From the sequence record NC_015287.1: a stretch of DNA of 64,000 nt, one strand, 5' to 3'. Positions within the stretch are counted from its first letter, which is position 1, and each line of letters starts with the position of its first letter. Positions 24,383 through 26,442 of the stretch are shown in pieces. The position numbers and the translations under genes are program-made. Below the pieces are notes generated by a model. It did no database searches. It worked only from the letters and a program-made list of their open reading frames with translations, and was not told where the DNA came from.

Positions 24383-24762
24383 AAGAACTTAAAGATTGGT
24401 TGAACTCCATAAACCTCACAAAAGAGGATATTACGGAGACAGATCCTGATGCGATCAAGAAGTATCCACCATTCATTGTGAACAAATGTATGTCAGCACA
24501 CATTGATACTGTCATGCTTGCCAATGAAATGAACTTAAACCACCACATAGAAAAGGGTGCTCAATATCAATTTTATCTAAATAGTGTCAGGAAGAGAAAG
24601 AGATTCTCTCCTTGGCTCCGCAAAGATAAGATCAAAGATCTTGACGTTGTGAAAAAATACTATGGTTATAGTAATGATAAAGCAATCCAAGCATTGAAAA
24701 TCTTAACTGCTGAGCAGTTGAACTACATTAAAAAACGCATTGACGTTGGAGGTACAGGATGA
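24379..24762 (+). CDS. gp62: Clamp loader small subunit
   Basis: KYPPFIVNKCMS, KRKRFSPWL, VKKYYGYS. Confidence 0.92.
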   Translation: MKELKDWLNSINLTKEDITETDPDAIKKYPPFIVNKCMSAHIDTVMLANEMNLNHHIEKGAQYQFYLNSVRKRKRFSPWLRKDKIKDLDVVKKYYGYSNDKAIQALKILTAEQLNYIKKRIDVGGTG

Positions 24763-25220
24763 GTGGGTTTACAGAACCTGAGATTGCTTGGTCACAAGAT
24801 CAGATGATCGAAGTCACACTTAACGAACCAGATGATTTCTTGAAGGTTAGAGAAACTCTGACGAGAATCGGTGTCGCTTCACGCAAGGAAAAAAAGATTT
24901 ATCAATCGTGCCATATTCTGCACAAGCAAGGTAGATATTATATTGTTCATTTCAAAGAACTGTTCGCATTGGATGGAAAGTCCGCTAATCTTTCTATCAA
25001 TGATGTGCAGCGTAGGAATAGAATCATCACTCTGTTATCAGATTGGGGATTGATTACTATTCTTAGACCAGAACAAATTGTAGATGTTGCTCCTTTGAAT
25101 CAGATCAAAGTTCTCTCTTATAAAGATAAAGGAGACTGGACTTTAGAGACTAAGTACAACATAGGAAAGAAGAAAAAGGTAGTACAATCGTCACAAAGTA
25201 CGTTCGTAAAGGCAGACTGA
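24759..25220 (+). CDS. regA: Translational repressor RegA
   Basis: DDFLKVRETLTRIG, CHILHKQGRYYIVHFKELF. Confidence 0.96.
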   Translation: MSGFTEPEIAWSQDQMIEVTLNEPDDFLKVRETLTRIGVASRKEKKIYQSCHILHKQGRYYIVHFKELFALDGKSANLSINDVQRRNRIITLLSDWGLITILRPEQIVDVAPLNQIKVLSYKDKGDWTLETKYNIGKKKKVVQSSQSTFVKAD

Positions 25221-25239
25221 CGGTTATCACTATGTTTTC

Positions 25240-25267
25240 AGAGGGTTTACATAACCCTCTTTTTTTT
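25240..25267 (+). terminator. Rho-independent terminator after regA
   Basis: AGAGGGTT-TACAT-AACCCTCT followed by a T-run. Confidence 0.85.
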
Positions 25268-25277
25268 ATGCTCGTTG

Positions 25278-25334
25278 TATAATTAGTAATGTCGCCGCAA
25301 GGGACAAAACTAAACTCGCTTTTAAAGGAGAAAC
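25278..25334 (+). promoter_or_regulatory. hsp20 -10 element and structured 5' leader (ROSE-like)
   Basis: TATAAT 25278-83; GNRA hairpin GTCGCC-GCAA-GGGAC; TCGCT can pair with the SD AGGA. Confidence 0.55.
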
Positions 25335-25766
25335 ATGACTAACATTCAAAGATATCATACTCAGGATCTGGGCACACTAGTTGACAAGATCATGAAGAAC
25401 AGCGTTGGTATGGACGATTACTTCAACCAGTTCTTCAATTTTGATTCCACTACTAATTACCCGCCCTACAATCTTGTACAAATTAACAATGTAGATTCTA
25501 GACTAGAAATTGCACTTGCTGGATTCAGTAAGGAAGAAGTTAAAGTCTACACAGAGTACGGACGGATTGTTGTAGAGGGTAAGAAAGAAAAAACAGAAGA
25601 AGAATCTGAGTATCTACACAGAGGTTTGGCTCAGAGATCTTTCCAGAGAGCCTGGGCATTGTCAGAAGACATTACAGTTAAGGATGTAAATTTTGCAGAT
25701 GGACTTCTCACAATTAAACTGGGCAAAGTGATACCAGAACATCATGCACGGAAAGACTACCTATAA
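25335..25766 (+). CDS. hsp20: Small heat-shock protein
   Basis: NYPPYNL, EIALAGF, YLHRGLAQRSF.R, F.DGLL.I; strong SD AAGGAG. Confidence 0.95.
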   Translation: MTNIQRYHTQDLGTLVDKIMKNSVGMDDYFNQFFNFDSTTNYPPYNLVQINNVDSRLEIALAGFSKEEVKVYTEYGRIVVEGKKEKTEEESEYLHRGLAQRSFQRAWALSEDITVKDVNFADGLLTIKLGKVIPEHHARKDYL

Positions 25767-25789
25767 ATAGTATTAGTTCGAGATGGATC

Positions 25790-25813
25790 AACCCTCCCTA
25801 CGGAGGGTTTTTT
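25790..25813 (+). terminator. Rho-independent terminator after hsp20
   Basis: AACCCTCC-CTAC-GGAGGGTT followed by a T-run. Confidence 0.8.
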
Positions 25814-25816
25814 ATT

Positions 25817-26395
25817 ATGGACATAAGTAACTTCAAGAATAATAGATTATCTGGTTTGACATCGCCATTTGAACCTGTAATATATGATTGCCCATATCAA
25901 GATCAGATTGCAGATCCTCTATTACAATGGATATATGATAGGGCAAACGTTAGAGTAAATGGTGGAGCATTAAAGACAAAGTTCTACACAGGAAAAGATA
26001 GAGATACACCAGAACATACCATATTGATTGATTGGATAGAGAGTTTGGTGGTGGAAGCAGTTCACGGAATGTCTAGGTGGACAAACTCTGCATACAACCA
26101 AAGTTCAGAGTCTTCCAAAAGATTTAACATTGCTGATTATTGGGGTATGTATTATGATGAGGGAGGAGGTGCAGTGTTGCATAATCACTGGCCATATCCC
26201 ATATCATTTGGATACTACCTAAAGACCCCAGAAGGCAGTTCACCATTGATTATAGATGAACAATCAATTCAAGTTACAGAAGGTAGATTAATTTTATTTG
26301 CTGGACATCAACCACATGAGGTTCCAGATTGTGAAGTAACTGGAAGGTGCATGATCGCAGGCAATATTGTGTATAAGGGTGTAACAGACTGGTAA
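25817..26395 (+). CDS. 2OG-Fe(II) oxygenase-like protein (HxH type)
   Basis: LHNHW, distal HEV, RCMIAGN. Confidence 0.75.
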   Translation: MDISNFKNNRLSGLTSPFEPVIYDCPYQDQIADPLLQWIYDRANVRVNGGALKTKFYTGKDRDTPEHTILIDWIESLVVEAVHGMSRWTNSAYNQSSESSKRFNIADYWGMYYDEGGGAVLHNHWPYPISFGYYLKTPEGSSPLIIDEQSIQVTEGRLILFAGHQPHEVPDCEVTGRCMIAGNIVYKGVTDW

Positions 26396-26442
26396 ATGTG
26401 GGAATCCCCTGACAATAAATATTGTTACAGGAGGTAAAGATC

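Follow-up and report, generated by a model that had tools for sequence, protein, structure and literature searches.

A conserved two-hairpin leader, probably a ROSE-like RNA thermometer, precedes hsp20 in Synechococcus phage S-SSM7 and its relatives

The DNA analysed here, a stretch of 64,000 nucleotides (nt) referred to as the window, belongs to the genome of Synechococcus phage S-SSM7 (GU071098/NC_015287; record position = window position x + 124000), with which positions 24700-26400 agree at 100% identity; the genes of that part are annotated as regA, hsp20 and a 2-oxoglutarate (2OG)-Fe(II) oxygenase gene. The short untranslated leader of hsp20, which encodes a small heat-shock protein, is the subject of this study (Table 1). 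I propose, with a probability of roughly 0.7, that this leader is a conserved two-hairpin RNA thermometer of the ROSE-like class, an assignment that leans on sequence comparison and on folding models. Judged by its sequence, the hallmarks of such a thermometer are all present and evolutionarily maintained; that it melts in the physiological range and thereby controls ribosome binding, and what its first hairpin does, I infer from the models.

Table 1. Features of the hsp20 locus of phage S-SSM7, in window coordinates (MFE, minimum free energy; ORF, open reading frame; SD, Shine-Dalgarno sequence).
Feature	Position	Strand	Basis or remark
Hairpin 1, UGUC-G-CC[GCAA]GG-GACA	25290..25306	+	MFE fold; ~-6.5 kcal/mol at 37 C
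A/C-rich linker AAACUAAA	25307..25314	+	Unpaired in MFE fold
Anti-SD CUCGCUU, with ROSE motif UCGCU (25316-25320) and bulged G25318	25315..25321	+	Sequence, conservation
Hairpin 2 loop UUA	25322..25324	+	Free to vary in relatives
SD AAGGAG, wholly paired in hairpin 2	25325..25330	+	MFE fold, opening cost
hsp20, 143-aa small heat-shock protein of IbpA/IbpB type	25335..25766	+	ORF, record annotation, Pfam HSP20 6.6e-14
Putative transcription start (leader of 44-46 nt)	25289..25291	+	5' end of metatranscriptome contig; evidence at contig level
Promoter box TATAAT-TAGTA, -10 element (TATAAT 25278-25283)	25278..25288	+	Sequence, conserved position
regA, T4-type translational repressor (stop codon 25218-25220)	24759..25220	+	ORF and record annotation; outside the element, sets its 5' boundary
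regA intrinsic terminator, stem AGAGGGUU/AACCCUCU then U-run	25240..25268 (hairpin 25240-25260)	+	Terminator scan
Terminator closing the hsp20 mRNA	25790..25815 (hairpin 25790-25809)	+	Terminator scan, contig ends

At 15-42 C the MFE fold predicted by ViennaRNA consists of exactly these two hairpins, each with one guanine bulged out (G25294 and G25318). Hairpin 1 pairs U25290-A25306, G25291-C25305, U25292-A25304 and C25293-G25303 on one side of its bulge and C25295-G25302 and C25296-G25301 on the other, under a GNRA tetraloop (GCAA, 25297-25300). The pairs of hairpin 2 are C25315-G25330, U25316-A25329 and C25317-G25328, followed beyond the bulge by C25319-G25327, U25320-A25326 and U25321-A25325, and within this helix UCGCU faces AGGA (25326-25329). 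The hsp20 start codon (AUG, 25335-25337) lies 4 nt past hairpin 2 and is unpaired at all temperatures tested in folds of the short leader, and from 37 C upward in longer contexts. A preliminary description of this DNA, made from the sequence alone, had located the leader, the GNRA hairpin and the two arms of the anti-SD helix correctly to the base, and its reading of UCGCU as a match to the ROSE motif U(U/C)GCU, paired to the SD with G25318 bulged, is what the MFE fold returns. It had further proposed folding at 20-42 C, over which the two hairpins persist, and an alignment of hsp20 leaders, in which covariation is indeed found, strong in hairpin 1 and limited to the end pairs in hairpin 2; its leader length of about 45 nt fits the metatranscriptome contigs described next.

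The transcript boundaries were taken from contigs of four marine metatranscriptomes. One contig of 493 nt covers approximately 25289-25781, its 5' end falling 2 nt before 25291, a contig of a related phage starts at that phage's own hairpin 1 (GGGUGAUGCCGAAAGGGUCAC...), and the 3' ends of the hsp20 contigs lie at 25781-25784. No contig in the four sets crosses 25213-25269, with hsp20 itself covered. At contig level these observations fit a monocistronic hsp20 mRNA of about 0.5 kb that starts 6-8 nt past TATAAT and carries a leader of about 45 nt. The regA terminator insulates hsp20 as a separate transcription unit, and the order of terminator and then promoter recurs in relatives.

No -35 hexamer was detected at the hsp20 promoter, and because it is absent, a scan for sigma-70 promoters made no call there; when the TATAATTAGTA box was treated as a class of promoter and sought throughout the window, one further site only was found, which is not above chance. 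In 80 loci fetched from viral contigs by the Hsp20 protein alone (61-100% identity) the promoter box is placed 6-8 nt 5' of hairpin 1, as it is in further clades, with TTAAATAGTA, TATAAATA and TTGACA-N17-TATAAT among its variants. In freshwater and other clades a complete sigma-70 promoter (TTGACA-N17-TATAAT/TATAAAT) precedes the same leader (loci L200-L265, L320-L327, L461 and L462), the S-SSM7 group has a -10-like box alone, directly after the terminator, and in some relatives TATAAATA resembles a T4 late promoter. Across the sequences compared, the promoter type is swapped among relatives and the RNA element is kept. In some divergent phage contigs, tRNA genes lie directly 5' of the hsp20 promoter (L330, 31-176; L282, 126-197). 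On the timing of expression, the published work on P-HM2 makes no mention of hsp20.

Some 250 different hsp20 leaders of phage contigs were compared, among them leaders selected through proteins of only about 30% identity, and the architecture is kept. All 80 loci mentioned above share one layout, in which the promoter box is followed by a hairpin, a G-poor linker, an invariant CUCGCUU, a variable loop and AAGGAG. Among relatives the linker ranges from 1 to 15 nt (mode 11) and remains poor in G, the loop of hairpin 2 measures 3-10 nt and is variable in sequence with both stems fixed, and the stem of hairpin 1 occurs in compensatory variants (GUCGCC/GGGAC, GUACGCC/GGGUAC, GGAUGCC/GGGUCC and GAACGCC/GGGUUC). 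A motif scan of viral contigs for ACTCGCTT-N2-8-AAGGAG found at least 119 loci; among the matches listed, 89 motifs sit 4-10 nt 5' of an Hsp20 ORF (28-69% identity), 3 more belong to a long Hsp20 or to a small ORF followed by hsp20, and several others end at a contig edge. Four further searches with divergent phage Hsp20s used the protein only, the loci not being selected on their leaders, and nearly all of these loci carry an SD-sequestering hairpin with a bulged G. The natural variants of the anti-SD include CUUGCUU, CCUUGCU (with AGGAGG), AAUCGCUU (with AAGGAUU), GACGCUC (with GAGGUC) and AACGCUC (with GAGGUU). Named carriers of the element are P-SSM2, P-HM2, S-RIM8, the freshwater phage S-CRM01, the Pelagibacter phage HTVC008M and the Agrobacterium jumbo phage Atu_ph07, and Hsp20 homologues are present in 490 phage records, cyanomyoviruses for the most part.

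Several observations were made on these relatives in passing. In P-HM2 (L459, NC_015284.1 133301-133798) the annotated hsp20 start falls within the promoter (ATGTCTGCTGTTATAATTAGTA...), and since the two-hairpin leader and the SD UAGGAG come after it, translation most probably begins at an ATG 75 nt further on; in this leader the inner pair of hairpin 2 is flipped (CUCGCUA/UAGGAG), making it a natural compensatory mutant. A full two-hairpin leader also precedes an ORF of 71-75 aa without a Pfam match, with hsp20 next in line, in what amounts to an operon of a small ORF and hsp20 (L098, 1388-1600 (-); L165, 744-968 (-); also L112, L149 and L142), and other small ORFs (63-84 aa) and one peroxiredoxin gene (L091, AhpC/TSA) likewise follow the ACTCGCTT...AAGGAG motif. 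Contigs of metagenome-assembled genomes assigned to Actinomycetota, Psychromonas, Acidibacter, Thermoplasmata and Gammaproteobacteria (L266-L271) bear a cyanophage-type hsp20 (45-62% identity) behind a phage promoter box and two-hairpin leader, and look like misbinned phage contigs. When one genome per species was scanned with the Hsp20 protein, only 8 loci emerged, each on a metagenome-assembled contig and most with a leader of the phage type.

A covariance model built from 17 phage leaders, with the window excluded (hereafter R1), gives a single match in the 64-kb window, at 25289-25341 (46 bits, E about 4e-11), and recovers 90 of 100 protein-fetched sources at E<=0.1. Because MAFFT misplaces the 3' strand of hairpin 1, covariation was counted on two alignments fitted to the model, A7 (96 aligned leaders) and A8 (90 protein-selected leaders); as fitted alignments favour pairing and lean towards the structure, slid and shuffled controls are given. 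In A7, compensatory changes are observed in all 8 pairs of hairpin 1, with 133 double changes against 30±4 in shuffled alignments (0 of 500 reach the observed number) and 9-38 in slid ones, and hairpin 2 is invariant. In A8, 97.6% of the cells of the whole structure are paired, against 75.4% when shuffled and 52-61% when slid, and there are 260 double changes against 66±10 when shuffled.

In A7 the anti-SD CUCGCUU, with the bulged G of hairpin 2, is invariant in all 91 distinct leaders; in A8 this G is kept in 89 of 90. The position 5' of this G is a C in 61 and a U in 26 of the 90 leaders of A8, and the natural alternation (59 C-G and 26 U-G in the pair beside the bulge) falls exactly at the variable position of U(U/C)GCU. 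The outer pair of hairpin 2 in A8 is CG in 68 leaders, UG in 12, AU in 3 and GC in 1, the inner pair UA in 70, AU in 9 and CG in 4, and in these sequences the end pairs of hairpin 2 thus show compensatory changes. Hairpin 2, bulge included, is also what RNAalifold predicts unaided from the unfitted MAFFT alignment. A parse that is free of any register recovers the bulged-G form of hairpin 1 in 150 of 157 unique leaders, as opposed to 19% of shuffles, with a CC/GG top and interchangeable UUCG or GNRA tetraloops; directly under the bulge there is invariably a pyrimidine-purine pair (UG 90, CG 46, UA 13).

The phage leaders are related to validated ROSE elements of small heat-shock genes, most closely to those of Pseudomonas ibpA and E. 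coli ibpB. The Rfam model ROSE_3 (RF02523) scores 38.1 (E 9e-5), 31.5, 27.4, 23.3 and 20.8 bits on phage relatives, where the E. coli ibpA leader, serving as positive control, reaches 100 bits with ROSE_2; the Rfam ROSE models derive from narrow bacterial groups. In the opposite direction, the best match of the phage-only model R1 in the 5-kb E. coli ibpAB locus is the ibpB leader (18.7 bits, E 1.6e-4), which reads ACUCGCUU-CUUAG-AAGGAG-N8-AUG and is identical to the S-SSM7 leader in both arms of hairpin 2, whereas the ibpA hairpin obtains only 8.6 bits. Both ibpA and ibpB carry ROSE-like thermometers, as the passage of PMC6096418 that cites Gaubig et al. 2011 reports. The elements of E. coli (ROSE_2, RF01832, for ibpA) differ from the phage leader in having at least three hairpins, a length of about 96 nt, stronger hairpins and a location in a sigma-32 operon.

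The Pseudomonas ibpA elements consist of two hairpins in 61-62 nt (Krajewski et al. 2013, PMC3669281); hairpin I is G+C-rich, insensitive to temperature and a suggested stabiliser of the mRNA, hairpin II is enough by itself for regulation, and the element is locked off when the bulged G is deleted in combination with U38C (PMC3669281). Like the phage leader, they have only two hairpins 5' of an IbpA-type gene, an A-rich linker, a free AUG, a stable G+C-rich hairpin I with a bulged-G motif (consensus GgGAUGCCGAAgUCGGGUCcC, compared with GGAUGCC-GAAA-GGGUCC in phages) and a hairpin II of the form ACUcGCu...aGgAG with a bulged G. The phage leader is virus-borne, shorter (about 45 nt) and richer in A+U, and its hairpin II, predicted to be weaker by 2-3 kcal/mol, has six pairs closed by U-A (CUCGCUU/AAGGAG), where the Pseudomonas helix has a G-C clamp (CUCGCUGA/UCAGGAG). 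The spacer between ibpA and ibpB of E. coli K-12 (L274, 2954-2974 (-)) contains AUGCUCGCCGUCAGGGAGCAU, just 5' of the thermosensing hairpin of ibpB; it forms a bulged-G hairpin like hairpin 1 of the phages (UCGCC-tetraloop-GGGA) and scores 13.1 bits on the hairpin 1 part of the phage model. Together with hairpin I of ROSE_3, this sequence suggests that a conserved bulged-G motif resides in the non-sensing hairpins of ibp leaders.

Other thermometers are more distant. Classical rhizobial ROSE elements control small heat-shock genes by zipper-like melting (described in PMC11182007) and share with the phage leader a 3'-most hairpin in which U(U/C)GCU is paired to the SD and a G is bulged, but they have four hairpins, about 100 nt and a far longer sensing hairpin, and their model (RF00435) gave no match to phage leaders. 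The hsp17/hspA thermometers of cyanobacteria (Cimdins et al. 2014, PMC4152365), the phylum of the host, resemble the phage leader in that a short 5' untranslated region (UTR) occludes the SD of a small heat-shock gene; Anabaena avalong has a ROSE-like anti-SD, although with a bulged U in place of the G, and Synechocystis hsp17 lacks the UYGCU motif and forms one hairpin, interrupted by an internal loop (PMC4152365). Protein and leader of the phage both resemble proteobacterial IbpA/B more than cyanobacterial Hsp17. The phage thermometers counted in 2024 are those of lambda cIII, SPbeta blyA (fourU) and a gut-phage sigma-70 gene (fourU) (PMC11182007). These are phage-encoded temperature-responsive mRNA structures as well; however, they work by a switch between alternative structures or are fourU elements, they control the lysis-lysogeny decision, an autolysin or a sigma factor, and none of them is ROSE-like, controls a chaperone or is conserved across a large group of viruses.

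Folding energies suggest how such an element might be tuned. The predicted cost of opening the SD falls from 4.3 kcal/mol at 20 C to 2.5 at 37 C and to 1.3 at 50 C, and the predicted free energy of hairpin 2 by itself rises from -4.4 kcal/mol at 20 C to -2.2 at 37 C. All melting figures given here are nearest-neighbour predictions that ignore the non-canonical pairs contained in the nuclear magnetic resonance structure of ROSE. The counterparts in E. coli ibpA and ibpB are predicted at -4.6 and -5.1 kcal/mol at 37 C, which leaves the phage hairpin about 2.4-2.9 kcal/mol weaker; at 20 C it equals the ibpA hairpin at about 37 C in stability, and its free energy (dG) would become zero at 54 C, as compared with 66-69 C in E. 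coli. Its working range would therefore be expected some 15 C lower, and the models predict a phage switch tuned about 15 C below the E. coli elements, matching the marine host. Over 90 phage leaders, the median dG of hairpin 2 is -2.0 kcal/mol at 37 C (interquartile range -2.9 to -0.75) and -4.0 at 20 C. In silico, a fully unpaired AGGAG is about 17 times as probable at 37 C as at 20 C in the full leader, deletion of G25318 keeps the element closed and a scrambled anti-SD opens it.

Under the thermometer interpretation, the weak six-pair helix of hairpin 2 would hold the SD through CUCGCUU and put it out of reach of the ribosome in the cold, being weakened by the bulged G25318 and by its A-U closing pairs; on warming it would unzip, and Hsp20 could be made from existing mRNA without new transcription. 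Hairpin 1, 5'-terminal, stable and non-sensing, would most likely protect the mRNA and, as a folding nucleus, aid the folding of hairpin 2.

A number of observations weigh against this interpretation. At E<=10 the window leader matches none of the Rfam models ROSE, ROSE_2 and ROSE_3, even as a 71-nt slice, the best phage relative (38.1 bits) stays below the ROSE_3 gathering score of 43, and hairpin 2 is without the upper G-C clamp that is important in the Pseudomonas elements (PMC3669281). A few phage hsp20 genes (of the L443 type) do not have the element. The core pairs of hairpin 2 cannot covary, because they are paired with the SD, and the comparative support for this helix comes from two end pairs and from alignments fitted to the model. 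The occlusion of the hsp20 ribosome-binding site is also ordinary, as its opening cost of 4.3-4.6 kcal/mol at 20 C ranks 26th of 74 and 14th of 32 in two gene sets from the window, ranks that are rough because both sets use heuristic starts. Every hairpin melts in silico, and open-ocean hosts meet small and slow changes of temperature, so that it is not evident what advantage a heat switch would bring. Finally, the importance of SD access in the hosts is uncertain, because most phage genes use no SD: 58 of the 74 heuristic window genes have no SD-like sequence within 16 nt of their start. An AGGAG SD is found in 2 of these 74 genes, and that of hsp20 is the strongest in the window; this rarity fits the arrival of gene and leader as one cassette from a lineage that uses SDs. 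CUCGCUU occurs in the window as often as chance predicts. As energy does not single the leader out, the case for a thermometer rests on the comparison with its relatives.

With occlusion of this degree normal for the genome, the leader might sense nothing at all, hairpin 1 stabilising the mRNA against decay that depends on the 5' end and hairpin 2 fixing a moderate rate of initiation on an unusually strong SD. Hairpins at the 5' terminus are known stabilisers (discussed in PMC3669281), and the hsp20 metatranscriptome contigs have a higher word depth than regA, although word depth is a poor measure. A constitutive module of this kind would nevertheless leave unexplained why a destabilising bulged G is retained almost absolutely (89 of 90 leaders), why a marginal helix with compensatory changes and weak A-U closing pairs persists in phages of hosts from cyanobacteria to Agrobacterium, and why the element is exclusively linked to a heat-shock gene and akin to validated thermometers, and I consider it improbable.

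Alternatively, the leader may chiefly be an operator through which Hsp20 represses its own synthesis, the signal being the load of unfolded protein, for instance during capsid assembly, rather than temperature. Free IbpA of E. coli binds the 5' UTRs of ibpA and ibpB and blocks translation until clients titrate it away, and ROSE-type 5' UTRs mediate repression by the IbpAs of E. coli, Cedecea and Vibrio, with Arg93 indispensable for RNA binding (PMC10474464). The best NCBIfam matches of the phage protein are IbpA (1.2e-25) and IbpB (1.8e-24), both under the equivalog cut-offs; R101, the equivalent of Arg93, is invariant in 15 diverse phage Hsp20s, and the equivalent of R97 is R or K. This is weak evidence, since Arg93 is a widely conserved residue of the alpha-crystallin domain, and a third requirement in E. 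coli, the positively charged K98, is replaced by an uncharged residue (A, G, S, T, V or Q) in each of the 10 aligned phage proteins. On the side of the RNA, one bulged-G module recurs in both hairpins (YGCC/GGR in hairpin 1, CGCU/AGG in hairpin 2) and offers candidate binding sites for Hsp20, the pyrimidine-purine pair under the bulge of hairpin 1 is not required by stability alone, and the ibpB leader, the best bacterial match of the phage model, is itself repressed by IbpA. The bulged-G site, however, is my own suggestion. I regard feedback as the chief function as unlikely, even though it is compatible with a thermometer.

The two functions could also be combined in a dual sensor, in which hairpin 2 would melt with temperature and both hairpins would dock free Hsp20 oligomers, with the chaperone being metered both to unfolded structural protein and to temperature, and the gene with its switch would have moved horizontally as a cassette among phages of cyanobacteria, SAR11, Agrobacterium and freshwater hosts. 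This picture is speculative, and I hold it only tentatively.

A published proposal concerns the same sequence at the level of DNA. In cyanophage S-PM2d, ATTCAAACTCGCTTAAATA is listed as the putative Pho box of S-PM2d130 (Hsp20), and the hsp20 mRNA increases under phosphate depletion (PMC10976474, Table 2), by which analogy the conserved ACTCGCTTAA stretch would be a binding site of the host PhoB. The sequence ATTCAAACTCGCTTAAATA corresponds to the linker, the anti-SD and the loop of the RNA element described here. No half-site (YTTAAYYW) and no CTTA-N7-CTTA exists on either strand between 25200 and 25340, a single half-site occurs in only 18 of the 157 unique leaders, always in the variable loop, and the hsp20 site of S-PM2d is untested by electrophoretic mobility shift assay in PMC10976474. 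The stretch moreover lies downstream of the putative transcription start, covaries as RNA and is conserved in Pelagibacter and Agrobacterium phages and in E. coli ibpB. With no half-site in the window, half-sites in 18 leaders only and a site that is transcribed, I reject the Pho box, which appears to have next to no chance of being correct. An operator for RegA, whose gene adjoins hsp20 here and in P-HM2 and S-CRM01, was likewise set aside, as the stretch between SD and AUG is not conserved and hsp20 has other neighbours in P-SSM2 and S-RIM8.

The 3' end of the gene shows features of its own. A box that resembles a T4 late promoter (TATAAATAGTA) overlaps the hsp20 stop codon (25764-25766) and is one base off the hsp20 promoter box (window 25762-25816). 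The 2OG-Fe(II) oxygenase gene begins (AUG, 25817) directly behind the 3' arm (GGAGGG) of the terminator hairpin and its U-run. The sole SD-like sequence of this gene sits inside the terminator, and opening it would cost 14-21 kcal/mol, the maximum in the window.

Searches of full-text literature gave no account of a thermometer in the hsp20 leader of a phage, although most subscription journals lie outside their reach and absence there is no proof; the preliminary description was likewise aware of none, which agrees with the three phage thermometers counted in PMC11182007, and a review from 2024 only speculates on viral RNAs behaving as thermometers (PMC10884466). Distinctive of the phage elements among ROSE-like ones are the minimal size, the weak sensing hairpin closed by A-U and the wide spread in viruses of several bacterial phyla. 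If the thermometer interpretation is right, it would extend the ROSE-like class from alpha- and gamma-proteobacteria to viruses, and would add a minimal 45-nt version, probably tuned to 15-30 C, that is represented by hundreds of natural variants, compensatory mutants among them. It would also give hairpin I of the short ROSE elements a conserved bulged-G motif of its own and correct the published Pho-box reading of the same sequence in S-PM2d.

The T4-like cyanophages kill a large share of the Synechococcus and Prochlorococcus in the ocean. Their hsp20 is one of 25 core genes (PMC3037559), and the same leader stands before it in hundreds of phages from oceans and lakes. If it acts as proposed, cyanophages carry a post-transcriptional sensor of their own that needs no host factor beyond the ribosome, and this would offer a molecular handle on how temperature affects the outcome of infection in a warming ocean.

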